Shown piece after piece: positions 26,660 to 47,400 of a stretch of DNA of 64,000 bases (position 1 is its first letter; every line of letters begins with the position of its first letter). Under the pieces are notes generated by a model. It worked only from the letters and a program-made list of their open reading frames with translations, was not told where the DNA came from and searched no databases. Source of the DNA: Phaeosaccion multiseriatum (lineage: Eukaryota; Protista; Ochrophyta, other classes); NCBI GenBank assembly GCA_965112735.1, contig OZ218953.1:1674001-1738000 (forward strand), given 5' to 3'. The position numbers were made by a program, and so were the translations under genes.

Positions 26660-27173
26660 TCTGCCGCTTGTGAGCACTATGCCTTCATAGAGGAAGCTTT
26701 ATAAAAAGGGAAGAGGAGGAGGAAAAGTAATTAATGGATTTCCAACGCGTACTGTGATATCCAACTGTTGAGAACACCTTCCCTCTTTTCTTTTTTCTGT
26801 CGGCCTCCTGTCTGATACTCCGAAAGATAACATACATTGAATACTCCACTCCTGACCTCCTCCTTCCTCCCTCCGTCCCACTACCTGTAACCGCCGCTCT
26901 CCTTCCCCCTTTAACTAAGGGAGAGGAAAGGAAAGGAAAGGAAAAGCTGTAAGGCCCCCGAAGCACGGGAAAGGAGCGTTGTACTGCTGCTTGCTCCTCC
27001 TTGCCTGTCCGCGCCCACACTCCTCTATGTACCGCTTCCTCCTCCTCAGCCTCCCCGCGCTACTCAACTCTCCCGCGTCCGAGGGCCCGCGTTCGCAGTC
27101 CTGCCTGCTATTAACACTTGACGACGACGCCTGCGGCTCATCCCATCGGATCGAATTGCTCCCATGCCTGATA

Positions 27174-28227
27174 TCATGTCTCGTCCAGCCAGCTTTGCTC
27201 CACAATCTCCCTCACACGCCTGTTGTACTCCCTCCTGTTCTCCTGATACAGCCGCGAGGCCTGGGGATGGTGGAGGGGCGGGGCAGGGAGCAAAAGAGGA
27301 GCAGTTGGTGATACAGCCCCCCAACACAGCACAGCACGGGGGGTGAGGCTTCAGTTAAGCAAAGACAGGGGAATAGCCTGAATGGAAGCTCTCTATTGTG
27401 ACGTCACCACACGAAACCTATGCACTACACGCCCATACCCCGCCGCTACTCCAAAACTCACAACAGACTCAAGCAGAAGCAAGACGCTCGTTCGCTCACC
27501 TCTGAGTTCGCCGGCGAGGCAGGGTTAGGGTCGCACAGCAGCGACTGAATGGACGTCAGAATGGCGGATATGTCGTAGATAGGACTCCACTGATTTTGCA
27601 AAATGTCGAGGCAAATCTGTCCATTGTTGTAAATGTTGGGATGGAACATGCGAGTGAGGAAGCGCACATTCGGCGGCTTGTTGGGGTAGTCCTCGGTGAA
27701 CTCCAGCACCAGCTTAAAGGTCCCGCCTTCCCAGGGGGTGTCATCCGGCCCGAAGATGACGGCCTGTGTTTATGAGTGTTTTGTGTGTGTGGGATGGGTG
27801 GGGAGTGGAAACCGGACGGAGAGCCGGAGACAAGATAGAAATAGAGAGACAGAGAGAGAGAGAGAGAGAGACGAGAGAGGGGCGGAGTAAGGTCAGAGAG
27901 AGAGAGACAGAAGGGGAGTGAGTGAGTGAGTGAGAAACAGGGGGGCGGACTGGGAGTGGAAATCGAGGAGGTGGGCGTATCATTCGGGCGGAAGAAGGAG
28001 GGAGGAAGGTCGATTAGACGCCATGACCCATCGTCGCAGGCAAGAGGCAAGCGAAGTGCCCGCCCCTCCCTTCCCACCCGCCCACCACTTTGACAGTGTA
28101 CCCACCAGGCACCCACCTGCCAAACCATGATGTTGTTGTCCATTGGCGCACCGGTGACGCCAGAGGGAGGGTCATTTTGGAGGCGGCGGAAATCCCGCAT
28201 GAGCCTCCGTCTCGCTGCTGTGGACAT
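27174..28227 (-). CDS. UBC2: Ubiquitin-conjugating enzyme E2 (Rad6/Ubc2)
   Basis: Exons 28227-28117 ([21 protein letters not shown]), 27763-27500 ([25 protein letters not shown]), 27260-27174 ([24 protein letters not shown]). Confidence 0.97.
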
Positions 28228-29535
28228 GACTGCTGCTGCTGACTAACCTAGCTATGCGTTGGCTTGCCTTGCGGGAGAGAGAGAGCGTCTCAGCCTAGGA
28301 GTATGGCTGGTGCTGGTGCTGGTGCTGGTGCTGGTGCTGCTGGGTATCAGAGTTTTATCCTTTCTCCGCGCGTCGTGTGCCTGGCCACCTACCGTGGCCA
28401 CGCAGAACTGAGAGCTCGGACGCTGCTGGTGCCGTCTCTCTGTAGTACATCGGATTGCGGGCGAGAGATTGGACGAGGAGCGAGGAGGAGTACGGGGTCA
28501 GCGCGAGCAAGCCACGAGCGGGGCAAAGGCATGATGACATGACGGCACCATGACAAAAAAGGTTGGGTGTGCCGCGCACGGGTTTGCACTGCGGAAGCAG
28601 CTGCTACGCAAGTCGCACCGCCATCACCATCACCACCCGGAGCACCAGCAGGAGCATGATACACACAGGCGGGCAGTAGGCGTGTGATTGGGTGATGCAC
28701 CCCGTCTCTCCACGCCGTCTCTCGCGTCCTCTTGTGCTTTACGAAAGGCGCTCGACCGAAACGGGGAAAGCATCACATCATCCACGACCAGCTCAGCCCC
28801 GCAAAGGGAGCTGCTGTCTTGCAAGAGATGAAGCCACACAAGAAGCACCAAGCCAATCAACCATCTCCTCCCCTACCCGCCCCCCCCCTCATTAAAAGAT
28901 GTCATTCGTGTACCCTTCTCTGGTCACACATTCCGGGTTTCCTTCGAGGCTTACCTTAACGCGGCGGAACACCTCCAAAGCAAGACCCGCTGCGGCTGCT
29001 GCGCCGTCCAGCCTCCGACCGCTCTCCTGCACCTCTCCGCTCCTTTCTCCTATTTTTCTTGTTTCTCCCCCTCCTTTCTCCTCTCAAAACAGCGGTCCTT
29101 CTCGTCGCTGCTGCTATCAGCCCTCCTTTCTCACAGTGCAAGACAGGAGGTCGCACCAAGGGAGGAGGGGGAGTACCGCAGATCCACGAGGATTTTTCTA
29201 GAGGCAGGAGGTGCGGAAAGGAAGGAAGGAGCGGACCGACACAGGTGAGCGGCAAGCGCGACGAGAAGAAGAGACGATAGAGAGAGAAAGAGAGCGGGGC
29301 GACAAGCGAGGATAGGGACAATAGGAAGCACTTGCAACCGGGGGCGGGAGTATGATTGTGGTTTATGATGTGGATTTGTGTGTGTGCTGTCGCGGCAGCG
29401 CGCCCCCCCCAATTAAACTGAAACTCACGAAATCGTCGTCCCCTCCTCACTTATAGAGAAGAGGAAAGGCAGAGAAAATATATATCATTTGAAGTGGGGT
29501 GACTTGCTGAAGGTTGCTGCGCATTCCGGGTCCTA

Positions 29536-31281
29536 ATGCCGGTGATGCAAACCGTGGCCGCTCTGGCCCTTCTGGCCTCGCCCTCCGCGGGCTTCGTCCT
29601 TATGCCGACGAGCTCCGCGGCTCTGGGCGGCGTCAAGACCACGCCCAGCAACGGGGGGGCCTCCGGCTTCACTGGGCAATCTGCTATGGTGAGTATACGA
29701 TGCGGCGAGAGCTCGAGGGGAGGGGCGGGGGGCGGAAGAAAGGGGTGGAGTGGTGACGACGGTGGTGATTCTTGGAAGAGGACCACGTGTTCACCTTCGG
29801 CTTGCTGCTGCGGCTTCTCTGGTGCAGCTTCAGGGTAGGCATAACAGCAGTCTGAATGGCCTGATAAAGGCGCTTGTTTTGAATGGAGATGGGCAGCAAC
29901 CGCTCCGCGGCCAAACTTGGAGCGGCCTGTGTAGCTCACGTTCCAGATTTTTGTCCGCACTCCTTAGCTGCACCTGGTCAAACGTGGAGTGAGGCGGCAG
30001 CCAGCCCTCACTGTCCGCGAGCTACACGCCCACCAATTGAAGCACTTCGAGTGAACTGATCCTGGGTGGTACTGACCCGGACACTCTTTCCCTTTTGTGC
30101 CTGTCGTCTCTCCCTCTTCCCCTCGTCTCTTGGCTCTCTATTCTTGCAGCCGTCCTCCACCTCCAACTACCGAGGTGGGCGCGCGTCCTCCGCCATGCAG
30201 ATGAATCTCGCAGACCGCTTCCTCCGAGTCGCCAAGGCCAACCTCAACAGCGTCCTCAAGAATTGGGAAGACCCCGAGAAGGTGTGTGTGTCTGTGTGTG
30301 TGTGTGTGTGTGTGTGACCAGGGGTTCGGTCAATCAGGGAAGAGGGGGAGTAAAAGTCTCGAATGGAATACAGCTGCTGCGCCCCATCAAGTCTGCGCAT
30401 ACGTGCACCCGCCCAACCCGAGCAAACGTGAAACGTGCCGAGGGCGGCACATGTGTGGCACCCTGCCTATGCTCTTTCGCTCCACCGTCTGACAAAGCAA
30501 AACTGCCGCTCTTCCTCTCCTCCTCCCTGTCCCCTATGTGGCTGTGATTGTGCTTGTGTGGCAGGTCCTGGAGCAAGCCACGGAGGACATGCAAAAGGAT
30601 CTCGTCAAAGTGAGGCAAAGCTACGCAGAGGTACGGGGTTGCGCACATCTGCACACAGGCGCACAAGCCGTGTGGTCTTCTTGTGGCTGTCTGAGGACGG
30701 AAAAGTGGTGTGTGGGCGTGGCTGGGATAGGTCTTGTGGATCCGGGCCGTGCGGTGCGCTGTCTCAACGGAGGCGCGGCTTGAAAGCTGCCTTTTGTCAC
30801 CAACTCCTGCGGGGGCTGGTGGTCCTCATCGCCCCCACTCTTACACGCCTCCAATGATGCATGACACACACATGTGCGCACACACGCGCACACACGCACA
30901 CTCACGCGCACTCACAGGTCTCGTCTAGTCAGAAGCGAATGGGCAAGGCGCGAGAGCACGCAGAGAAACTCGCAGACGAGTGGTACCGACGGGCGCAGAT
31001 CGCGCTCGACAAGGGAGACGACAATCTCGCCAGGGAGGCTCTCACACGCAAGCAAGCCGAAGTGGACACCATCAACGGTCTTACGTAAGTGCTGATGGTG
31101 CAGAGGCGGCGTAAGGGTTAGGGAGTCAGGGTAGGTCGAGTCGGCACGGAGGGAGGACTGGCGAGGACGGGCTGCAGGGCTGGCGGATGGACTGATTGAT
31201 TGGGCAAACTTGAGCAGATTGACGTCACGTCACGCGTCGCGTTCGGATATCCCACCTTCACACACACGCACCCCCCTCCCC

Positions 31282-31312
<31 letters not shown>

Positions 31313-32173
31313 ACAGGCAACAGATGGAGATTCAGGAATCAGCCATCAGTAACCTCTTTGAGGCGATGCGCCAGCTTGAGAGCAAGATTCAAGAGGCGAA
31401 GGTAGGTGGGGAGCGGGGCGGGGCGAGAGAGCTGTGGAAGGGGGAAGAGGAGGCCTGACTCCGAGTACGGTTGGACGGACGGATGGACTGATCGGCTGAC
31501 TAACTTCGCTCACCCCTCTTGCGTGCTTCGCTCACTCCTCTTCCTACACAGTCTAAGAAGGACAACCTCATCGCCCGAGCGAGGACTGCGGCGACCACCA
31601 CCAAGGTAAGGTGCACAGGACACACACATACACATACTTCATGTGGACCTGTCTGAATTTGCCTCGCGTCTCTCTCTCTCCGACATTTATCCCTCGCTCT
31701 CCCTCCGTCTATCCCTCTCTCTTTCTCTCCCTCCGTCTATCCCTCTCTCTTTCTCTCCCCCCTCCCTTTCCCTCTCCCCTCCTCCCTATTCTCTCCCTGA
31801 CTTCTGTACCCAGGTGAACGACATGCTGTCGAACGTGGGCGGCACGAGCGGCATGGAGGCCTTCGAGCGCATGGAGGCAAAGGTGGAGAACCTCGAGAGT
31901 ACAGCAGAGGTGAGCGAGGAGAGAGAGAGAGATGATACAAGGGAGAGGAGAGGAGGGAGGAGAGGAGAGGAGAAGGAGAATGGAGAGGAGGGAGGAAAGG
32001 AGAGAAGAGGAGAGGAGAGGAGGAGAGTGGAGAGAAGAGAAGAGTGAGGGGGGGATGAAGAGGGGGAGAGAGAGAGAGGAGAGAGAGAAGATAGATAGGA
32101 AAGTGCAGAGATTTGGAGAGAGGCGTGTGGAAGGAGGAGATTCGGAGAGGGAAGAGGAGCTTCCTTCCCCACT

Positions 32174-32207
<34 letters not shown>

Positions 32208-32973
32208 CACGCACACACACGCACTCTCTCTCCACGCCTCGCCTTCCCTCCCACAGGTTTCTTCTCAGCTGACCGGCACCATGGACGGTGGTCTGGAGCA
32301 GCAGTTTCGCATGCTGGAGAGCGGCAGCGCTGTGGACAATGAGCTCGCCAGCATGAAGATGGCACTCAACCCAAGCACGAAGGAGGCTCCAGCGGCGGGG
32401 GCTGGGGGGGCAGGGGAGCCGGCGTCTGCGGCGAGCAGGTGAGCGGAGAGCTTTCTGGACAGGAGGGGTGGGCTTGAACAGCTACCCCGCCTCTTGGATA
32501 GGAGAGAGGAGAGGGAGGGGGGGGGGGTGGGGAGAGGAGAGGAGAGGAGGGGAGGGGAGGAGAGGAGCAACCACACCGGTGTAGAGCGTGTGTTAGATGG
32601 GTCTGGGCAGCACTAGCAGCAGAGAGGGAGGAGGGAGAGGGAGAGGGAGAGAGGGAGAGAGGGAGAGCGTGGAGGGGCTACGAGTGCGAGCACAGCCCCC
32701 TGGGCATGAATGAGTGCTATCGCTGGGTCTACATAGGGGGATGCCTTTGAGGGCGCTGTGCTCTGCTTCCTCTTGTCCATGGTATTCTCTTTGCGCAATT
32801 CTTTCTTACCCTTTGCCTGCTCGCTTCTCTCCCTCTCCAACTACCACCGCAGCCCCCCTCCCCCGCCTGCCGCCGCCGCCGACCCCGCCGTAGACGACGA
32901 GCTGGAGAAGATGAGAAGAGACATGGCCGCCTCGGCCTCGGGATCAAGCCCCAGCAGCGGGCCCAGTGCGTAA
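29536..32973 (+). CDS. VIPP1: Vesicle-inducing protein in plastids 1 (PspA/IM30 family), plastid-targeted
   Basis: Bipartite leader (ALALLASPSAG-F); MNLADRFLRVAKANLN..EDPEKVLEQA; WYRRAQIAL.KGDDNLAREAL; LIARARTA; AFERMEAKV; extra C-terminal helix VDDELEKMRR. Nine exons. Confidence 0.93.
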
Positions 32974-33348
32974 GCGAGGGAGGAAGGCAGTGTATGCGCA
33001 CCCCTTTGAGCGCTCGCCGTCCTGAGTCGCCTGTATGTAGCCATGCGTACGTAGCCTTACGTATGTAGCAGTAGCCTTAGCCGTTCACTTCGTTCCATCC
33101 GCTCTCGCTCCTCTCTCTCTCGCCTGTCCCACCTATCGTATATCCCACTCCATCCCACCCCACCCAACTCCACCCCACATTTGTGTCTCTCTTCCTCTCT
33201 TCTTTATATGGTATTGCAATTTGTCTTGGGACTTCTTCACTCCCTCACCACCCACCCACACGTGATAGTGGTGCGTGTGTAGTATTGTAGTGAGTAGCAC
33301 ACTTTACAGTAGAGTTTAAAGCGAACGAACAAAAATAGAATGACCTTT

Positions 33349-33522
33349 GCTAGAAGCAGGAAGCAGGCCGGCTTGCGCCGGCCAGAAGCAGGAACCAGCC
33401 TTGGCCCTCATCATTGCCTTATTACATGGCTTTCCCCCAGAACCTGGAACCTGCCTGGCCGGCTGGCGCCAGCCAGAAGCAGGAAGCAGGCCGGCTGGCA
33501 CCGGCCAGAAGCAGGAAGCAGG
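33349..33522. repeat. Dispersed direct repeats of ccagaagcaggaagcaggccggc upstream of the SEL1 gene
   Basis: Four copies of the agaagcaggaa core in two doublets separated by ~70 bp. Confidence 0.75.
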
Positions 33523-33686
33523 GTCGCCTCAGAAGCATGTCAAGGGCGGGCGGGCCGAATTGTTCAACGTTTGTCGTCACAATTGGCGCCTTTCTTCACC
33601 TGTTGGAATACCTGCCCCCCTCCTCAGTCTCTTCCGCGTATGATGAAGAGATGCAAGACGGACAGCGAAGAGCTATACATTCAGTC

Positions 33687-36600
33687 ATGAAGAGTAGGCT
33701 TAGATCTCGAGAGGGAGGAAGCTTCTCTGCTCCGTGGACCTCGCTGCTGCTCGGGCTGCAGTTCCTTCTGTGGGCCGGTGCAGTTGCTGCCGCCGCTCCC
33801 CGCCTTCCTCATGGGGCGGACCCAGGATTTGACGTGTACAGATTTCTGTCCAGCTCAGAGGCGCGGGTGGCAGTGGCCAGCCACGAGCATGTACAGGCGC
33901 AGGGAACACGAGTAGGTGCAGCAGAAGCAGGGGCACGAGCGAGGAGGGGGGAGCGGGGTGAGCTCGCGGACCCAATCCTGAGGAGCCGGGCGCTCTTGCT
34001 GGAGAAGAGGGTGGAGATATTCTTCGAGAATCAGACGGGCGGTAAGCTTGAATGTCTGCGGTAGACTCTGGTGGTGGGCAGCAGCAGGAGGCACGACGAG
34101 AGGGAGGTGGAGCGGAGGGGGGGGGGGGGGGCGGCCTTTGGGCTCAATTGCTCTGCTGCTTCTTGATTCTCGTTATTCATCACGTGCGCTGTTCATGTTT
34201 CTCACTTCCCTTCTCTCCCCCTTCGCCTCTTCCCCTCTTGGCGGCTCAGAGCCGGTGCAGATCTTTTGGGCGGTGAGTGCTACAGAGCATCAGGCGGAGG
34301 GGGAGAGGAGGAAGCGGCGGTGGAAGGGGGTGGGTAGGTGGGATGAGGTGGGAACGGGTAACGCAATTGTGGCGCGTACAGAGTGTGGCGATCTCTCGTG
34401 GCGCTAGCTTGGAGAAGAGACTTGACTCCTTTGTGCTTGGCTGAGTTGACTGAAGCACTGATGTGTTGCATGCTCTTCCTTCCCTGCTGCGGGGCCGTTC
34501 GCTCCAATCGCAGGACTACGATGGCATGATGCACGCGAAGGATGTCATCGCCAATGACAGACAGACAATGCACAGAACGACGTGCGGACGTAAGTCAGAG
34601 CCCACAGAGGCGTGTAGGGGCGGTGGGGCGGTGGGCGGTGGCCCCTCCCACTCCACGACGGTAGTGTGGACGACAGTGGAGGTTGGAATCGTTTTCGAGT
34701 CTATCTGCCGCATCTGCTTCTGCACTGAGCTCTGAGCCTTCAGCCCTGTCCTGTCCTGTCCTGCCCTGTCTGCCCCCCCCCCTGCGCCTTTTGTTCCTCC
34801 TCCCCCTCTTCAACCCCTTTCAGACATCTTTGTCGTCAAGAAGCTTCAACCCACTGTCGTGGTGGTCGACGACGATCAACAGCAGACACAGATGCCCCTC
34901 CCCTCGCAAGCCCCTCGCTTCGAGACCATTGCTGTGTACAACGTGTCCTCCGACCCGCATCAGTACCTAGTGCTGGGGCCTGACGCCGCTTGCGCTCCCC
35001 GCACGCCCATTGGAGGGGCCACCTACTACGAGTATGAGGGTGAGGAGCTTCGCCGTAGTGTCTGCTTCATCGATTGATCGAGTTGATTAGTTGGTTGGCG
35101 GTTTGATTGGCTGCAGCAGCAGGACCAGCAGCAGGAGCAGCTGATCGTGTTGCTGGTGATAGTGGTGGTGGTGGAGGAGGGGGAGGTAGACAGGCTGGTA
35201 CGGAGAAGGGGTGGTTGGAATGACCGCTCACCGCTGCTTTACTGTGTTGGGGGAGACGCGGAGAGGCGCTGCCGTGCCTTGGAACTGTGCTGGAGACGAA
35301 GGCGCATCAAAGCACGCAGTTCTTCAGTTCTTCCTCCTCTCCAACTAACCTTTTCCTTCCTTCCCTCCTTCCCTCCTTCCTTCCTTCCTTCCTTCCTTGC
35401 TTCCTTTCTTCCTTCCTTCCTTCCTTCCTTCCTTCCTTTATCCCTCTCCCTCCTCCCTCCTCCTCCTTTCTCCTCCTCCATCCTCGGCAGGCATGCTGTC
35501 AACGTACCCTTTCTCGGCAGAGGAGATGGAGGCATGGGGTGGCGTCGACCCGACGGGGCTCTACGACTATGGTGGTTACGGCGCAGCGGCAGGAGGGGGC
35601 GAAATGGACCACCTTGAGAGCTTCTTCTCCAACGGTGCCAGCAGCGGCGACCCCGGAGAGTCCCCGGGGGGAACGCCGCAGTCTCAGTCTCAGTCAAGCC
35701 GCGACCCCCCCCCTGGGGAGCCTCTTGAAAGGAGGGCAGAGGTCGACTGGCTGGAGAGGGCGGAGGCGGAGCTGTTGTGGAAGGGGCAGCGGCAGGAGGG
35801 GGGCGGAGGGGGAGGGGGAGGAGGAGCAGCAGAGGGGGGGGGCAAGCACGCGCCGCCCGATCTCGTGCGGGTGCGTGAGTTGTTGCTCAAGGGAAGCGTT
35901 GCAGGCGGGCCTTTGAGCTCTCTGTACCTCGCAGTCCTGCATCTGTCCGGCCTGGCCACGTCTCGAGCAGGGGACAGGGTCCTCACAGAGAAGGAGAGCA
36001 CCCAGCAGGTGAGATCGAGGAGTCGATGGCTGTGGATGGCAGTGGGGATGGCAGTGGAAGGCCCTTGCCTTGCTTTGCCTGGCTGGCCTAGTATTGCCTT
36101 GGTGCCAGTCAGCCAATCTGTCAAGTCAGTCACTTGCCAGTCATCTGGTCAGTCTCACTCGCTCACTCACTCGCTCACTCACTTACTCCCTCCCTTACTC
36201 ACTCCCTCCCTCCCTCCCTCCCTCCCTCCCTCCCTCTGTGTGACCTACGCCTCTGTTGACATAGGGCATCATGTGGGCACGGTGTGCGGCTCTGCAGCGA
36301 GATCCTCACGCCACTCTGCTGCTCGGCTATAGGTGAGGGGGGGAGGGAGGGAAGGAGGGAAGGAGGGAGGGAGGGAGGGAGGGAGGGGTAGAAGGGAGAC
36401 AGAGAGACGAGCCCTCGTCCCGACACCCGCTGTCCCGACACCCTTTACTGACCTTCCATTGCCTTACTCAGGTACCTGCACGGTTACGGCGTGCACAAGA
36501 GCTGTGCGGCATCTGAGCTGTACTACATCGCCGCAGTCGAAGGCAAGTCAAGTGGGGGGTGCTGCTTCTTCCCTACCGACTCACTGACTCACTCACTGAC

Positions 36601-37306
36601 TGACTGACGGACTGACTCACTGACTCACTGACTCACTGACTCACTGACTGACTCCTTGACTGACCTGTGCTTCGGCTGCCCTCTGCTGTCCTCTGCTACT
36701 ACCAATCTGTTACCACACTTCTCTGCGTACAACCAACTCCTCCACTTCAAGACTTTGTGGGACTGTTCGGCCTGGACGATGGAGGCGTGGCTCTGCCGAG
36801 GCGCTTCTTTCGCCTCCAAGACGAGCCCCTGCAGGACAGCAGCGTGCCCTACGCCAGCCTGGGGGAGGTGAGGGAGGGAGGGTGGGTGGGTGGGTGGGTG
36901 GGTGGGAGGGAGGGAAGGAGGGAAGGAGGGAGTGAGGACTGTGTGCTTGTCCGGTCTCCCCCTGCTCTGCTTGTCCGGACCCTTCCCCTGCCCCCTCTAC
37001 TCTACCCCCCCACCCACTCACCCCCTCACCACCCCCATCCCATCCCCCCTATCCTCCTGCAGGCGGATATGGCTCGTGTGGGTTTGACGACGACCGACAG
37101 GGCACAGCTTCTCACAGACCTTCAGGCGGGGGAGGTAGGGGGGAGAAGGAGAGCGGAGGAGGAGAGAGTCCCACAGACTTTCAGGCGGAGGGGGTGAGGG
37201 GAGGGGGAGGCTTACATATGCCCACGTAACATCACATCACAGAGGACTGAGGACTCACATAAGACTGGATTGCCGTTGGCCGACACTTGCGCCGGTCTAT
37301 TTGGTG

Positions 37307-37394
<88 letters not shown>

Positions 37395-39112
37395 CCTACC
37401 TGTCTGTATGTTTGCCTACTCATACGCATGTATGCCTCGCTGAGTACGCCTCCTCCTCCTCCTCCTCCTCCTCCTCCTCCTCCTCCTCCTCCTCCTCCTC
37501 CTCCTCCTGTGCTCCTCCTCCTCCTCCTCCTCTCCTCCTCCTCCTCCTCCTCCAGCCGTGGGCGGAGCTGACCAATGCTTACCTGCACATCGATGGTATG
37601 CCTGAGATGGGCATCGAACGCAACCCCGAGAGGGCCTTCGACCTGCTCTCCTCCGCCCGTGCGAGAGGCATCACAGAGGTCAGAGGCATCGTGCAGTATC
37701 CATGATAGGATTCAGATGACGGTCTCTAAACAGCTGAAACACCAGCTGAAACTCAACTACGAGTGTTGTTTCTTACTTGCGTTGCTCTCTCACTCTCTCC
37801 CTCCCTCTCTCTCCCTCTCTCTCTACCAATACACCTCCTGCACGCCCTCCCCTCCCTTTTTATTTTTCAATCTTTGCTACATGACGCACACATGTGTTTG
37901 CTCTTCTTCTTTATATAGGCTAACACGTACCTAGCCTGGATGCACGAGACCGGCATTGGCGCAGAGGTGAACCGCGTCATCAGTCGCTCGCTGTATGAAG
38001 AAGCCGCCGCCCATGGAGACCCACAGGCCATGGCCAAGCTTGCCACCATCATCATCTATGACGATCATCAAGTGCAGCCGGCGTCCAAGGCTAACAAGGA
38101 GGACTATCGGCGGGTAGGTCTGGAGTGGGGCGGGGGTGGGGGTGGGGGTGGGGGTGGGTGGTTACCTTTATCCTAACTTCTTACCTTCTTACCTTCTTCC
38201 ACTTCGCTTATTTTGTTCCTTTCCGTCAACAACATTGCTCGCTTGGCTTCGGTGGCAGGCTTTCGACCTCTTGACCGAGGCAGTTAAGGCAGGGTTCCTC
38301 CCCGCTCACCAGACCCTGGGCATTGTGTGGAGGTGAGTAAGTGCGCAGGAAGGGAAGGGAAGGGAGGAGAAGGGAGGAGAAGAGGCTGTGGTATGGGAAG
38401 CGGCAGTGGGTTGAGCCCTCGCTGTTGACGCACGGAGGAAGAGGTGTGGCTGGTGGTGAGTGCGGTGTCATGCACGCCTGCCTGCGATTGATCATCGTCC
38501 ATCCCCTCCCCTCCCCTCCTTCCTTCTTTTCTCACCCCGCCCTTCCCCAACACACCCACTTACGTACGTACCTACTTACGTACCTATTTAGATACGGTCT
38601 GATGGGCGGTCTCTCCAACTTCACCAAAGCCCTCGAGCACTTCAATGCTGCTGCAGACGCCGGAGTGAACGGGGCTCTGCTGGAGCTGTCGGAGATGCAT
38701 AGACAGGGCATGGGCACGCAGCCTTCCTGCCGCACGGCCGTTTCGTTTCTGAAACGCTTTTGTGATGATATGATTGACAAGATCGACCTACAGTCCGCCA
38801 AGAGCTTCCACGAGAGCGGCAATGTGAGAGTGAAGAGAGAGAGAGAGGGAGGGAGAGGGAGAGGGAGGGAGAGGGAGGGAGAGAGAGAGAGAGTTGAGAG
38901 AGAGTGAGAGAGAAGGAGGGGGGTGAGGGGGGGGAGGAGGGGTGATGCCTTCTTACGGCCGGAAGGACATTGAGGCCGAACGGATGCGCCGCCTCTACCC
39001 CCTGCGTGGCCGACCATTCCGATCGATATTCCTCCCCATCTCATGTGCTCATGTGATAACGTCCTCCTGACACCCCCTGTCCTGAAACCCTGTTTGACAC
39101 CTTCTGTCCTGA

Positions 39113-39176
<64 letters not shown>

Positions 39177-39716
39177 CTCTTTCCTGACACCCTATTCTGT
39201 CCTGACTCTCTCTCTCTCTCTCTGTGTGTCCGAACAACCTCCGTCCTGATACCCTGTGCTGACCCCTTCTGTCCTGACACCCTATGCTGACCCCTTCTGT
39301 CCTGACACCCGGTCTTTTTTTCCTCCGCAGAACCCGGCGGCGTTCTTTTCCTATCTCCGCGCGGCTGAGGAGGGGAGCAAGGACGGGGCCGCAAGTGGTG
39401 AGTGAGTGAGTGCGTGAGTGCGTGAGAGAGTGAGTGAGTGAGTGAGATAGTGGGTTTGTGAGTGAGTGAGTGAGTGAGTGAGTGAGTGAGTGAGTGAGTG
39501 AGTTAGTGATTGAGTGAGTGAGTGAGTGAGCTCCTTCCTCCTTCCCTTTCTTTTCTTTCTGATGAGCGACTCCTTCCCCCCCCCCCTCGTTCTCTTGGCA
39601 GTGGTGTGGCTGCTAGAGGCTGAGATAGCAGCAGCGAGCACAGGAGGCTGGGACGGCAGCAGCAGTCGAGGGAAGGGAGAAGGGGCAGCAGCAACAGCAG
39701 AAGAGACAGACGGGGG

Positions 39717-39749
<33 letters not shown>

Positions 39750-41641
39750 GGCAGAAGGTGGTGATACAGCGGCAGGGACGCCTTCCCCTCTGTGGAGGAT
39801 GCTCAAGTCTGCAGGCTGGGACCTCAAGGCGAAGGCGCATGCGTACCAGGTATGTTTTGTCTAACGTTCTCAATGTAATCACGGTGGTAGTTAACGGAAT
39901 TTATGGAGGGCAGTTAACTTATGCGCCACCCCTCTCGTTCGTACGCCCCTGCCCCGCGCCGCTGGTCTTAATCCTCTTTTGTTTGTCCTTTCTAACCCCC
40001 CCCCCCCCTCGGCTGTCCTTGTGACCCCATCCGTCGCACCAACACGCCAACATGTAATGGCAGGTGATGGGTGCTGAGGACGGAGATGCTGATGCAAAAT
40101 GCGCCCTCGGGGATAAGGAATACGTGCGATGGTAGGTGGGAACGGGGAGCGGTTTTATTGACTTATAGGAATCAACCTAAGAACGGGGAAGGGGGAAGGG
40201 GAATGGGAGGGGAAGTGGGCACACACGAGGGGAGAAGAGGGGCGAGACGAGACCAATGGAAAAGGGAAGGCGAAGGGGAAGGGCTCCTCCTCCTGCTCCT
40301 CCTCCTGCTGTATCACTCACCATCGAACTGCCGCTGCTGCTGCTGACGCTGTATCACCAACAGGCGATCCCTCAAGGATTCTCACCCCCCCCAGGCTGCG
40401 CTTGCTCTGGCGGCAGCTACTCGTCTTTACTCCCAAGCGGCCCTTGCCCCCCTCTATCCATCCTCCCGCTGCAAATACAACCTGGCCTACCTCAATCAAT
40501 GGGTGAGTGAGTGAGTGAGTGAGTGAGTGAGTGAGTGAGGCGGTGCGTGAGTGGATGGGTGAGTGAGTGAGTGAGTGAATGAGTGAGTGAGTGAGTCAAA
40601 GAGTGAGTGGGTGGGTGGGTGGGTGAGTGAGGGAGTGAGTGAGTGAGTGGGTGATTGCATACGTGTATGTGTGTGCGCGTTCATGCTTCCTTCCAATCTA
40701 GCCGCTTACACACGGGCCATACGCACGCACGCACGCACACACACACACAGGGCATTGGAGTGGAGAGGAACGTCACGGAGGCGCGTCGTCTCTACGTTGA
40801 CGCCAACTCTTCTCCTGCCACACTCGCGCTGTGGGCTATGGAAGCGATGCTTCTCTGGGAGGAGCTCAGGTGGGTTGCAGGGTGGGCATCGTAGCAGGGA
40901 CGACGCAATCATCTTTTTTCTCTGAAGTCGCCTCTAGTGTGTGTTGTGTGTAGTGTTGTTCTTTCGGCTGCCTTCCTTCGTTCATCAGGCGGTGATGTGA
41001 TGGTACGGCGGTACAGCAGTTGGTGACATAGTCGGTACAGGGCGCCGGTAGCTCGCTTCCTCGTCTCACTGCCCTGTCTGTAAGTCAAGTGATGTAAACC
41101 GTAGTACTACCTGCCTACCTACCTACCTACCTATCCACGTATCTGCCTACCTACCTACCTACCTACCTACCTACCTACCTACCTATCTACCGCATACCAC
41201 AGGGGGGCCTTGCTGTGCGCCTTCACTCTCGTACTCGCCGTGCTCGTGGCGAACGTGATCAAGGCCAGAGCGAAGGCCAGCAGAGCACGAAGCAGAGCAC
41301 ATGCAAGAGAAGGGGAAGAAGAGCAAACAAGGGCGGCAGAGGCGGCAGCAGAGGTTGACGCGGCTCAGAACCACCAGCACCAGTCATATCGGCAGCAGCA
41401 GGAGCAGCAGGAGCGTGCAGAGTCCTCGGCTTCAGAGGGTAGACAAGAGGGAGGAGCATTACAAGGAAGGGGCGAGGTTGCTACTGCTGACAGGGACGGG
41501 GAAGGGGAAGAGAGACACGAGTGGGGGTCCGACAACGACAGCGGCAGCGAAGGGAGCGAAGGGAGCAGCGTCGTCTTCGTGGAGCGAGAGGGACAGGAGG
41601 GAGGAGGGCAGGGAGACGCGGGACAGCAGCAGCAGCAGTAG
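33687..41641 (+). CDS. SEL1L/Hrd3-like ERAD component: signal peptide, VHL-beta-like domain, SEL1 repeats, C-terminal TM
   Basis: Signal WTSLLLGLQFLLWAGAVAA; SEL1 repeats (GIERNPERAFDLL, HETGIGAEVNRVISRSLYEEAAAHGDPQAMAKLA, KALEHFNAAADAG); Hrd3/SEL1L-like GMGTQPSCRTAVSFLK..YLRAAEEG..AVWLLE; TM ALLCAFTLVLAVLVANVI near the C-terminus. Confidence 0.8.
39064..39311. repeat. Degenerate ctgtcctgacaccc minisatellite in SEL1 intron
   Basis: Several ctgtcctga(c/t)accc units interleaved with (CT)n. Confidence 0.7.
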
Positions 41642-42285
41642 CAGCCACAGGGAGGAGGTATCTCGGCGGGGAGGCCGAGGGATAGACAGACAGGCGCCCC
41701 CCCGCCCTTAAGTAGGCAGCCCCCGACGCAACCCCCCCCCCCCCCCCCAACTTGCCCCCCCCGGGCCTCCACGTCAGCATCAGGAGGAAGGGGGGAGAGT
41801 TCTATGCCCTTCTTCTCTCCGCCCTCTGATGAGAGCCAGAGAGAGAGAGAGACAAGCGCTGTTCCCTGTCATCAGATTGTTTTATACTTTCAAAACTTCT
41901 GTTGTACTGTAAAAAAAAAAGGATGGGGTGTATTTTTTTGCATCTCCCCCCTCTGATAACATGTACCTCCTATTAAAAGAAAAAAGAGATTTGAGTTGTT
42001 GCAGGAGAGGGCTGAGTCACCCTCCAATCCACCCCCCTTTCAGCGGACAAACCACTCACCATCCCCATCAGCATGAGCATGAGCATGAGCATGCCCGAAA
42101 GAGCACAGGGCAAACACTCCCAAGGACCGATCGGAGAGAGAGAGAGAGAGAGAGAGGAGAGGAAGAGAGACATCTTCGTCGACGTTCGACGCGTCAAGCT
42201 TCTACGCACACGGCACTTGTTTCTTCCGCACACCGCCCCCGACTTCCTCCGCCCCATTCCTCTACAGTCCTGTACTTGCTGTCTC

Positions 42286-42410
42286 TTGTCCTGACACCCT
42301 CTGTCCTGACACCCTCTGTCCTCATATCCTCTGTCCTGACATCCTCTGTCCTGACATCCTCTGTCCTCATATCCTCTGTCCTGACACCCTCTGTCCTGCC
42401 ACCCTCTGTT
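42286..42410. repeat. 15-bp tandem minisatellite (ctgtcctgacaccct) x8 just past the U1-70K stop
   Basis: Eight units with minor variants. Confidence 0.9.
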
Positions 42411-42414
42411 CTCC

Positions 42415-43083
42415 TCAGCGGCGGCTGTACTTGCTGTCTCTGTAGCTGTCCCTCCCTCTGTCCCTGTCCCTCGAACTCGACCTGTCCCGCTTCCTATCTC
42501 TCGTCCGCTCCCTACTGTCCCCTCTCCTTCCTCTGTCGTCACTGCCTCTCCCACCTCCTCCATACACTCGGTCGTCTCGATCCCGCCCCCCACCACCGCC
42601 CCCCCTGTCCCCCCCGTCGTCCCTCCTACTACTTCCGTAGTGTCCGTCTGTGGTTCCCCTGTCGCCACCCCCATAAAAGTCCGGCGGCGGCAAATCGGCC
42701 TTCTTGGGCTTATCCTTCCTCGTGTTGCCAAGCCCCCCTCCCAGCCGCCTCGGTCTCCAGCTCTTGACGGTCCTGCCCCTCTCCACATCCACCATCACCC
42801 GCTTGCCGTCGATCTTCCTTCCATCGGCGGATTTGTACGCGGTGCGCATATCCTGAGGGGTCATTTTGAGTGGAGTGGAGTGGGGTGGGGTGGGGTGGGG
42901 TGGGAAGGATTTGAGTGAATGAGTGTGGAAGCGTGGAGTGAATAAGCGAGTGGAGTGAAGACAATGGAGTGGAGTGCATGAAGGTAGGGCGTCGGGCGTG
43001 AGAAGAAGAAAGAAAACAGTATGGAGCAGGAACGGATATAGAGTCGGTAGCAGCGCAACTGCAAGAGAGAGGTAGAGATAGAG

Positions 43084-43156
<73 letters not shown>

Positions 43157-44242
43157 GAGATGGGGAGGGAGAGAGCAGGGGGGACGGGGCAGGAGGGATA
43201 AACAACCGAAGGCAGGCAAGGCAGACCGCTTGTGATTGCAAGAGAAACACAGCACCCACAACAGTACTGCACACATTGCTTCTCTGGCTCTCCCTACGCC
43301 ACACTCACAGATTCGTTCTCGAACTCAATAAAGGCATACCCTCTCGGATTGCCCTCTTCATCCTCCACCACCCGCAGCGACTTGACCGGGCCATAAGTCT
43401 CAAACTCGCGCCTCAGCTTCTTGTCCGTCGTGTCGTGACTGAGGCGAGCTACAAAGAGGGTGTTGAAGGCATCCCCTCTGTCCCCCCCGTCCGGGTTCCA
43501 GGCCTTGATTTTCTCCTCCAGGGCGGCGTCGTTGGCTGCCATCCTCTCCTTCTTGACTCTCGCCCGTCGCTCCAAGGGCGTCTCATAGGGGGGTGGAAGA
43601 GGCGGGGTCTCCTTCTCGAATAACTCGCTCAGGGGCAGGGCTGTAACCCCAGTCATTGTCTGGGTTTGAGGGGGGAGGGAGGGGGGGGGGGAGTGGGGAA
43701 GGGCACGACATGAATGAAGAAATGGTTAGGGCACGTTCAAAGGGCGCGCGGGGAGGAGGAGAGGAGAGAGAATTATGCCACCAGTGACTAGAGCGGTCCC
43801 AGGTGGAAGCAAGCGGTTCTGCTCCGTATCGCTGTTGTACTCGGTAGCTCTCGGCCACTCTATTCTTGTCGTCAGACCCTTCCATCACTCACCACAGACT
43901 TCTTTTTGGGAATGGGTCTTCGGAAGTCGAGGGCCGGGCGCGGGTCGAAAAGCGCCTTAAGCTCTGTGGGAAGACACGATCATGGAAGGGTATCATAAGT
44001 CACAGGAGCAAACAATACTACACCTTTGGATATGGAGCTGCAGCAGCACAGCAGTAGCAGCCAGCAGAACAGAACGTAGTCAAATGTTAGTGGGAGTATT
44101 CGCTGCACAGCCCCCACCTTATCCCCTTTCTCCTCTTTCTCTCTCCTCTTTCTCACTCACCGGGCGGAAGGGTGGCAATCGCAGGCATGTTATCTCTGCC
44201 CGACATCTGCCCCCGAGGGGTCATTTGCCGACCCCGCGACAT
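42415..44242 (-). CDS. SNRNP70: U1 snRNP 70 kDa protein
   Basis: [15 protein letters not shown]-terminus; [37 protein letters not shown] (RRM); [34 protein letters not shown]; RD/RS-rich tail. Confidence 0.96.
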
Positions 44243-44433
44243 GGCTCCCGCTCCTTTCCCTCCTCTTCTACGCCCTGGGGAGTCTCACTGATCCCTATTA
44301 TATCCTTTGGTATCCTTGTTGTCTTGTTTGGGCTGGCGCGCCCGGCTGAGCCCCCCCCCCCAGAAACTGGCACTCAGACTGAATTTCGTGTGGGTTCCTT
44401 GGTCATTGTTGTTCAACAATAAACACGCTGACA

Positions 44434-47400
44434 ATGACAATGACGATGGCCAGATGGTGTGCACTGAGCAGTGTCTCTGCCGTGGCGGTGCTGCTGGGGA
44501 GCAGCTTCGAGGCTTCTGCCTTCATGCCTTCGGTAGTGCAGCCCTTGGCCGGGCAGGGAGGTGACAGGGCGGGCGGGAGGACAGGTAGATCGTATGCCAG
44601 AGGGGCCGGGCCCATGCGAATGTCGTCTCAGGAGGAAGAGCCCCAGACGCGCCGCGATGTAGTTGCACCCATGTTCGAAGACCAGTGTGACCTGACGGGC
44701 ATCACTCTCTCGCGCTTCATGTGAGTGGAGAGAACCAACAAGACTCAAAGGAGCCGCCTACTTTGTCGCCCTGCCTCCTTATCTTCCTATTATTGCTGCT
44801 GCTACTGCTGATGCTACTGCTACTGCTGCTGCTGCTGGTGGTACTACAGAGAAGCGAGAGAGAGAGAGTGAGAATGGTGTTTACTATCGCTAATTTGCCA
44901 GCCCCGTCGTCCTATACCCCTTCCCACTCATCCAAACTCCAGGGTGGAGGCAGTAGCGGCGAACCCCCATCTACACGAGCTGGACTCCATCATTCTCTCC
45001 GTACAGGTCAGTCATCAGCATTAGCCACGTCCCATTCTCATTCATTTATCATGTCTGGCTGAGTAAAGTCAAAGAGCACGTGAGACAACACAAGAGGGAG
45101 AGTAAAGAGAGGGGCGCCGACTGGAACTACGCTCTTTATGGTCCTGCAGCTGTGGTACAAGTATTGACTCCTCCCCCTTCCAACCCCCTTCCCTCTCCCT
45201 CTCTCTGTCCTCTCCCCCCTTGTATACCCCACAGACCGCATGCAAGACCATTGCCTCCGTCGTAGACCGAGCCCCTCTCTCGGGCCTCCTCGGGCTCGAG
45301 TCCGGCGGCGGCTCCATCAATGTGCAGGGAGAGGAGCAGAAGAAGCTCGACCTCGTCACCAACGATATACTCAAGAAGGCTCTCAAGTACTCGGGAAAGG
45401 TGGGCACCCTGGCCTCAGGTAAGCAAGTGTAGAAGTCAATGGGTAGGTGGATGGAAGGATGGGTGCGTGGGTGCGTGGGTGCGTGGGTGCGTGGGTGCGT
45501 GCGTGGGTGAGTGGGTTGGTGGGTGGGTGGGTGGGTGGGTGCAGATCGAGAGGAGAGAGGAATGAGTGGGTGTGTTCAGTGGATCCATCGGTTCATGTGT
45601 AGGTGCAGGTACACGGGTAGGTGGGGGCTGTAGGCATATGGGCGTAGAGATGGATACATCAGCCTGTAACAGTCAGGGGAAGCCTATGTTCCCTCCCCGT
45701 CATGCCTGTGTACTGACGCGCCCTCTCCTCTACCTCTTGGTGCCTTTCTTCCTCCCCTACTTCCTTCCTTCCTTCCTTCCCTCCTTCCTTTCTTTGTTGC
45801 CCAAACAAACAAACAAAAACAGAGGAGGAGGACGAGCCGGAGGACATGAGCGATGTCAACATTCAGGACAAGTACAGGGACGTGGGCCTCAAGACCACTT
45901 CCTTCAACAAGGACGTCATCATGGAGGAGGTAGGTGGATGCCAGCGTGAGTGCGTGTGCGTGCGTGTGCGTGCGTGGGCGTGTACCGAAGTGTCTTCTTC
46001 CTTAATGCTCTTGTCGTCCTTCATCTTGGTGTTGTTGTTCTTGCTGCATCTTCCCCTCACCCCTCATATGCCTCTAATCCATCCAAGACTGCGGGCAAGT
46101 ACGTGGCGGTCTTTGATCCATTGGACGGGAGGTAAGCAAAGCAACGGACATCACACACACACGTTACCAAGATAAGAGAAGGAGGGGAGGGAGGGGTGCA
46201 TCAGGCGGGCTGGGCACGGGAGCGTGTTTGTTTTGTTCAGTGAAGTTCATCATTTTAGAGTGTCGCCTCTATCCCCCCCCCCCTCTCTCTCTGTCTCTCT
46301 CTCCCGCTCTTCCTGCGTCTACGGATCTATCTCTCATCTCTCCACCCCCCCCCCCCCCGCTCTCTCCCTCTCTCCCTCACCCCCTTTCTCTCTCCCTCCC
46401 TCTCTCTGTCCCTCCCTCCCCCCCCCCTATGGATCTATGACTTGCTCTGTCCTACCCCCCCCCCCCTCTCCCTCCCTCTCTCTCTCTGCCCCCCCAGCTC
46501 CAATGTAGACGCAGGCATCCCCACGGGCACCATCTTCGGAATCTTTGACGAGGACAAGAAGGCCGCAGAGGAGTGCAAGATCGGTAAGTCATTCATTCAG
46601 TATGTCAGTGACTATGTCAGTATGTCAGTCAGTCAATCAGTGACTTAGTTAGGGAGGGAGAGGACAAGAAGGCAGCAGAGGAGTGCAAGATCGGTAAGTC
46701 ATTCATTCAGTATGTCAGTGACTATGTCAGTATGTCAGTGACTATGTCAGTATGTCAGTCAGTCAATCAGTGACTTAGTTAGGGAGGGAGAGGACAAGAA
46801 GGCCGCAGAGGAGTGCAAGATCGGAAAGTCATTCATTCAGTATGTCAGTGACTATGTCAGTATGTCAGTGACTATGTCAGTATGTCAGTCAGTCAATCAG
46901 TGACTTAGTTAGGGAGGGAGAGGACAAGAAGGCCGCAGAGGAGTGCAAGATCGGTAAGTCATTCATTCAGTATGTCAGTGACTATGTCAGTATGTCAGTC
47001 AGTCAATCAGTGACTTAGTTAGGGAGGGAGAGGACAAGAAAGGACAAGAAGGCCGGAAGTCAGTGAAGGGGTGAGTGGTTTGTGATTGAGTGGGTGAGTG
47101 AGTGAGGGAAAAGGGAGGGAGGGAGTGCGTGAGTGAGTGAGTCAGGGAGGGAGTAAGTGCTTACGTGCGCATGGACGCGTGCGTGTATAGAAAGATGGAA
47201 GGAAAGAATCACGTCCTTTCCCGCCCCCCTTGCGCAAAGTCTTCCAACACTCAACACCCAACCCCCTCCTCTCCCGCCCCTCTGCCTCCCCCCTTCTCCC
47301 CTCCCCTCCCCTCCCCTCCTCCCCCGCCCCTCTCCCTCCCCCTTTCCCCCCCCCCCCTCCCCTCACCTCCTCCCCCTCTCCCTCACCCCTTCCCCCCCCG

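Follow-up and report, generated by a model that had tools for sequence, protein, structure and literature searches.

A probable, highly divergent SEL1L/Hrd3 adaptor with an orphan N-terminal domain in the alga Phaeosaccion multiseriatum

Which protein is encoded by an intron-rich locus on contig OZ218953.1 of the ochrophyte Phaeosaccion multiseriatum (assembly GCA_965112735.1), and does its N-terminal part hold a reader of hydroxyproline? The locus lies within a window of 64,000 nucleotides (contig positions 1,674,001 to 1,738,000, forward strand), which is the whole stretch of DNA analyzed here and to which all coordinates refer. A first-pass annotation had proposed that a domain resembling the β domain of pVHL is fused to a receptor of the SEL1L/Hrd3 type. 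SEL1L (metazoa) or Hrd3 (yeast, plants) is the lumenal adaptor of Hrd1, the ubiquitin ligase of ERAD (degradation associated with the endoplasmic reticulum, ER). It is a conserved gatekeeper of lumenal ERAD, and its lineage-specific N-terminal add-ons, such as FN2 in animals, are poorly understood. The β domain of pVHL (PF01847) binds hydroxyproline and acts as substrate receptor for the CRL2 ligase. We find that the SEL1L/Hrd3 half of the proposal is supported by matches in the PDB, a collinear profile alignment, a phylogenetic tree and a predicted signal peptide plus transmembrane (TM) helix, and that none of the sequence tests applied supports the VHL half. Most probably, the product of the locus is a highly divergent SEL1L/Hrd3 adaptor, to which an orphan N-terminal domain is flexibly tethered on the lumenal side.

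The gene model was obtained by reading the region 33600–41760 and tracing open frames together with the splice consensus downstream. It consists of 19 exons that join into a single frame of 1072 residues (33687–41641, + strand). The introns measure 139–507 nucleotides, and 17 of the 18 have GT-AG boundaries, with one GC-AG intron. The gene is missed by six-frame views of open reading frames (ORFs), as had been noted before. From the N- to the C-terminus the predicted parts are a signal peptide, a domain of about 120 residues, a low-complexity linker, Sel1 repeats, a TM helix and a charged tail. A Kyte-Doolittle analysis returns just two hydrophobic segments (residues 19–37 and 928–946), the second of which, the TM helix, is followed by a flank rich in Lys and Arg. 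This pattern suggests a type I topology with an N-terminal signal peptide, lumenal repeats and one C-terminal TM segment.

The assignment to SEL1L/Hrd3 is well supported by sequence comparison. Scanned singly, exons 10, 11 and 13 match the Pfam Sel1 family (PF08238) with E values of 0.014 to 2.4e-5; each of these matches stays under the whole-protein cut-off because the introns split the repeats. With exon 13 alone, human SEL1L chains are found in the PDB (E = 2e-21) and outrank bacterial Sel1 proteins. For the whole model, the best local matches are SEL1L/Hrd3-type proteins, which align over 350–410 collinear residues with 23–29% identity. Furthermore, residues 341–927 align in one collinear piece to positions 139–627 of a 696-position profile derived from 23 Hrd3/SEL1L sequences of eukaryotes (167 bits), whereas 12 bacterial Sel1 proteins give only 3–10 overlapping repeat matches stacked on the center of the same profile. 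In a maximum-likelihood tree, the protein falls on the eukaryotic side of a branch that separates it from these 12 bacterial proteins with 100% support in the Shimodaira–Hasegawa-like approximate likelihood ratio test (SH-aLRT). The grouping of the repeat region with eukaryotic Hrd3/SEL1L, which the first-pass annotation had made a matter for phylogeny, is thus borne out.

Close relatives of the repeat region did not appear. Among the best 150 matches by summed repeat scores, found with exon 13 in 1.8 billion representative proteins, none exceeds 37% identity. A metagenome scan with the same exon returned Sel1 loci only, with 31–37% identity across the greater part of the query and 72% in matches of 18 residues. 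A MAFFT alignment of one Hrd3 homolog with the exon rows piled the exons up on a single repeat; with two rows, the alignment led to 120 Sel1 (Hrd3/SEL1L-like) database proteins, none of which is close to the protein described here.

The N-terminal domain comprises about 120 residues (approximately 105–223) and is encoded by exons 1–4. Its putative first strand, from about residue 105, lies at the end of exon 1. Exon 2 is a micro-exon of 23 nucleotides (34250–34272, + strand; EPVQIFWA), whose donor at 34273 reads GTGAGT. Exon 3 (34514–34589, + strand; 25 codons plus one base) forms the middle of the domain. Exon 4 (34824–35039, + strand; donor GTGAGG at 35040) supplies the remainder, up to about residue 223, and contains an insert rich in Val, Asp and Gln as well as two hydrophobic, strand-like stretches. 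The exon junctions proposed earlier (34041, 34250–34272, 34514–34589 and 34824 onward) are each flanked by AG/GT, and splicing them reproduces exactly the 50-residue peptide on which the VHL comparison was founded, corresponding to residues 109–158 of the model. The start of exon 4 at 34824 likewise agrees with the first-pass model; its end had to be moved one base upstream, from 35040 to 35039, because the frame with the next exon requires it.

Exons 2–4 look coding. A codon model trained on exons 5–19 against intron trinucleotides scores them at +25.2 bits in the proposed frame vs. −33 and −22 bits in the other two, and the best of 2000 random intron pieces of 315 nucleotides reaches −5.5. 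With training restricted to the non-repetitive SEL1 exons the score is +33.2. Taken singly, exon 1 scores +29.3 in frame (−18 and −11 out of frame), exon 3 +16.2 in frame and exon 4 +12.7 (−20 and −31). In exons 2–4, the GC fractions of the first, second and third codon positions (0.63/0.39/0.74) resemble those of the SEL1 exons. Splice sites were scored by position weight matrices derived from introns 5–18 and ranked within a region of 1.45 kb. The acceptors at 34823 and 34513 rank first and second there, and the donors at 34590, 35040 and 34273 third, fourth and seventh; the micro-exon acceptor (tenth) and the exon-1 donor (nineteenth) are weaker. An exhaustive search of exon chains from the ATG to exon 5 retained exons 2, 3 and 4 in every top model under three intron penalties, and the micro-exon acceptor at 34249 is present in all best-scoring models. 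Scoring of exon chains without an intron penalty was rejected since it over-splits the gene. Moreover, a DNA run reproduces positions 34135–35349 with zero differences. The SEL1 part would be left with no signal peptide if it lacked exon 1, so exon 1 is needed for entry into the ER, and it is plausible that the N-terminal exons reside in the same mRNA as the SEL1 exons.

No homolog of the N-terminal domain was found among 281 retrieved proteins, the 150 representative matches or the 120 further Sel1 proteins. Exon 4 gave one candidate and no match in a word-indexed protein database, a result at noise level, below recognition, in the ESM Atlas, no Pfam match, and in the PDB a single chance match to a phage capsid protein (E = 0.79). 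The 50-residue peptide has no relative among the metagenome contigs searched. Because the lineage is poorly sampled, this lack of relatives carries little weight in either direction. The sole Pfam row for the domain, taken as 122 residues, is Auxin_BP at E = 0.064; a cupin or auxin-binding protein was discarded on the basis of this sub-threshold value and the absence of the His-x-His metal motif. N-terminal add-ons also differ among the homologs: an animal-type sequence (P0087) carries fn2 and a protein from a marine metatranscriptome (P0057) carries ShK. Additional lumenal domains at this position are thus a known theme. P0057 and its cluster members P0152–P0155 are Hrd3/SEL1L-like proteins of about 1020–1075 residues with an N-terminal extension of about 580 residues, in which ShK-like and weak Tudor-like matches are found.

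In the arrangement we favor, the locus would encode a highly divergent SEL1L/Hrd3 ortholog. This ERAD adaptor would span the membrane in type I orientation, with a solenoid of Sel1 repeats in the lumen that would partner the Hrd1 ubiquitin ligase. The lineage-specific domain of about 120 residues would precede the repeats on a flexible tether of about 120 residues rich in Gly, Glu, Ser and Pro, and would sit where metazoan SEL1L has FN2 and the marine homolog its ShK-like domain. Its most likely role might be accessory lumenal binding of a substrate feature or a cofactor, feeding the Hrd1 complex.

Several observations count against this arrangement. The terminal branch of the protein is very long (2.67 changes per site), and the tree, while putting the protein on the eukaryotic side, does not settle its position there; because of this branch, orthology is argued from collinearity and not from close relatives. 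The domain looks β-rich, as judged from its hydrophobic pattern alone. Two further donors of exon 2, at 34330 and 34348, are also in frame and would yield exons of 80 and 98 nucleotides. Exons 2–4 add up to 315 nucleotides, and direct splicing of exon 1 to exon 5 keeps the frame as well. Three RNA runs, in which about 5% of the words sampled occur, match the locus in microsatellites only and contribute no exon-joining reads. Lastly, the score of the VHL comparison (29) lies above every null window sampled (about 375000).

This last point leads to the alternative that survives best, in which the N-terminal domain is a true remote homolog of the pVHL β domain with a partly conserved hydroxyproline pocket. 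It would recognize hydroxyproline, or a mark like it, on proteins in the lumen and pass these on to Hrd1. The pVHL string used for the comparison is correct, being identical to residues 74–121 of the VHL chains in the PDB. In the ungapped register of 48 residues, 8 positions are identical and 19 positive. W88 and H115 are kept, S111 is replaced by T, W117 by F and Y98 by K, as reported before, and N78, D-G at 92–93 and G114 are matched in addition. The hydroxyproline pocket of pVHL is formed by W88, Y98, S111, H115 and W117. The corresponding positions here are W, K, T, H and F, i.e., two identical, two conservative and Y98 lost, a tally that counts only if the register is real. None of 200000 fixed-register shuffles reaches +29 (z about 6), and shuffling the whole domain with local alignment gives a p value of about 0.02. 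Ungapped scoring of real windows gave a maximum of 22 in 127714 six-frame windows of the 64-kb stretch and of 24 in 247387 windows of unrelated proteins. In the local set of 281 proteins, moreover, the top three phmmer matches of the domain are three VHL fragments.

Other results stand against this. The first-pass annotation had suggested a search with PF01847, and neither the 50-residue peptide nor the 122-residue domain gives a VHL row at E ≤ 10; phmmer against all PDB sequences likewise returns nothing at E ≤ 10, and PF01847 occurs in 0 of the 120 Hrd3/SEL1L-like database proteins. Targeted comparison of the domain with three VHL fragments yields 3–4 bits (P about 0.003) by phmmer and a probability of 6.7% (P = 0.005) by hhalign. 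The fragments are near-identical vertebrate sequences, hence the VHL profile adds little over a pairwise comparison, and these P values are not independent support because they re-measure the similarity that prompted the hypothesis. The tail of the null scores drops about five-fold per 10 units, and extrapolation to a score of 29 gives roughly 2e-6 per window. Such a value is notable for one domain and one family, yet it is expected to recur by chance many times when a genome is compared with all families. In addition to the change of Y98 to Lys, the conserved Pro-Gly is replaced by Asn-Asp. Either alternative exon-2 donor would add 19–25 charged residues inside the W-x-D-Y-D-G motif and, if a longer exon 2 is used, the motif underlying the VHL alignment is interrupted; the coding score of the extra stretch is about neutral (−1.8 bits). 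A BC-box pattern occurs nowhere in the 1072-residue model, and a BC-box would not be expected in the lumen. VHL β domains are known from animals and from certain proteins of bacteria, and a literature search for a VHL β domain fused to Sel1 repeats found nothing. Taken together, the resemblance to the pVHL β domain is weak and compatible with chance on present evidence, and remote homology seems unlikely to us. A function in reading hydroxyproline is pure inference. The fuller proposal, in which a genuine lumenal VHL-type β sandwich on a Hrd1 adaptor defines an algal degradation or sorting pathway dependent on proline hydroxylation, appears quite unlikely.

A second alternative concerns the 5′ end of the model. 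Exons 2–4 might be partly or wholly absent from the mRNA, or exon 2 might be longer, and the N-terminus would then be a signal peptide followed by a disordered spacer. The in-frame route from exon 1 to exon 5, the low ranks of the micro-exon acceptor and the exon-1 donor, and RNA runs with matches to microsatellites only are in keeping with this possibility. Models with the exon-2 donors at 34330 and 34348 score 71.1 and 71.4, respectively, vs. 66.5 for the 23-nucleotide form, so that the three in-frame donors lie within 5 bits of each other. However, the skip form, for which exons 1 and 5 share the same phase, scores 25–30 bits below the full models. The region's best acceptors belong to exons 3 and 4, which also give a strong frame-specific coding signal, and a run of 105 stop-free codons with GC of 0.74 at third positions, as in the SEL1 exons, is unlikely for an intron. 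We therefore regard a mis-modeled 5′ end as very unlikely, and retain the orphan domain as part of the predicted adaptor. The stretch between exons 1 and 5 (34042–35490), and with it the whole N-terminal domain, could still be an in-frame cassette that is either included or skipped.

Finally, two adjacent genes, i.e., a small secreted protein from exons 1–4 with a stop at 35075 and a SEL1 gene starting at an ATG at 35493, are highly improbable: unspliced at 35040, the frame does reach a stop 12 codons on, and the ATG lies 2 nucleotides inside exon 5, but the downstream product would lack a signal peptide and have the C-terminal TM helix as its only hydrophobic segment while Hrd3/SEL1L repeats must be lumenal, which is why we rate this model low, and the 451-nucleotide gap resembles the other introns of the gene, with a strong donor (rank 4), the best acceptor (11.5 bits) and a pyrimidine microsatellite.

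The remaining parts of the gene, all on the + strand, fit the order given above. Exon 1 (33687–34041) begins with the ATG at 33687, encodes the hydrophobic, signal-peptide-like residues 19–37 and about 70 residues rich in Ala, Gly and Arg, and ends in phase 1 at the donor GTAAGC. An alternative in-frame ATG 36 nucleotides upstream, at 33651, would add 12 residues with the same signal-peptide character; the start codon at 33687 is a modeled choice. Exon 5 (35491–36008) encodes the linker of residues 224–345, rich in Gly, Glu, Ala, Ser and Pro, and then the first helical Sel1-like segment. Further Sel1-like repeats are encoded by exons 6–11 (36265–36332, 36472–36542, 36752–36867, 37063–37134, 37556–37678 and 37919–38113) and exons 12–18 (38259–38332, 38592–38823, 39331–39397, 39602–39849, 40064–40131, 40364–40502 and 40751–40869). 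Exon 19 (41203–41641) contains the predicted TM helix (residues 928–946), its positively charged flank, an acidic, Gln-rich tail of 125 residues that would be cytosolic, and the stop codon. Intron 7 (36543–36751; donor GCAAGT) has the sole non-GT donor of the model, and its GC-AG boundaries were accepted because they are needed for the frame that gives SEL1L-like sequence.

Long microsatellites occupy nearly every intron of the SEL1 gene, with units (CTGT)n, (CCT)n, (GAGT)n, (CCTA)n, (CT)n and (CCTT)n; they include the tracts at 35340–35480, 37300–37555, 39110–39230, 39400–39530, 40505–40650 and 41110–41195 (+ strand). The RNA runs that match these microsatellites are seawater metatranscriptomes. 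In the flanks (27000–33600 and 41700–45000), long six-frame ORFs on both strands have no Pfam match, and no Rfam RNA family was found over the whole window.

The firm result is thus the model of an unusually divergent SEL1L/Hrd3 gene, and the VHL idea serves as a lead. A different orphan add-on, carried on a flexible tether in an alga, indicates that evolution can fit further recognition modules into this slot. Proline hydroxylation is common among the secretory and cell-wall proteins of algae. If the module were VHL-like, it would link proline hydroxylation to ER quality control, a link that is directly testable, and a lumenal VHL module would, if true, mean that a hydroxyproline reader has been paired with a ubiquitin ligase a second time, independently.

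How does the predicted protein compare with the known systems? In contrast to the pVHL β domain, the algal domain has no Pfam or PDB sequence match to VHL, conserves neither Y98 nor the Pro-Gly turn, and is accompanied by neither an α domain nor a BC-box. It is predicted to reside in the ER lumen, whereas pVHL is found in the cytosol or nucleus, and aligning its last strands to pVHL requires an insert of 16–25 residues. Its similar size, apparently strand-rich pattern and the N, W, D-G and G-H at positions 78, 88, 92–93 and 114–115 are the features that resemble pVHL. Compared with SEL1L/Hrd3, the predicted signal peptide, about 600 residues of collinear Sel1-like repeats, the single C-terminal TM helix and the cytosolic tail are shared. 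A non-repeat segment after the middle repeat cluster is found as in SEL1L, and human SEL1L is the best PDB match. The algal protein differs from the SEL1L/Hrd3 homologs retrieved by its low identity (only about 25–29% to any of them) and very long branch, and from SEL1L/Hrd3 by low-complexity inserts (residues 224–345 and about 750–790) and its acidic tail of 125 residues. Metazoan SEL1L carries an FN2 domain in its N-terminal lumenal region, whereas the algal N-terminal domain is not FN2 and belongs to no detectable family. The algal protein resembles FN2-bearing metazoan SEL1L and ShK-bearing P0057 in placing a small extra lumenal domain before the first Sel1 cluster, and differs from both in the domain itself, which is unrelated to FN2 and ShK and without a homolog in the collections searched.

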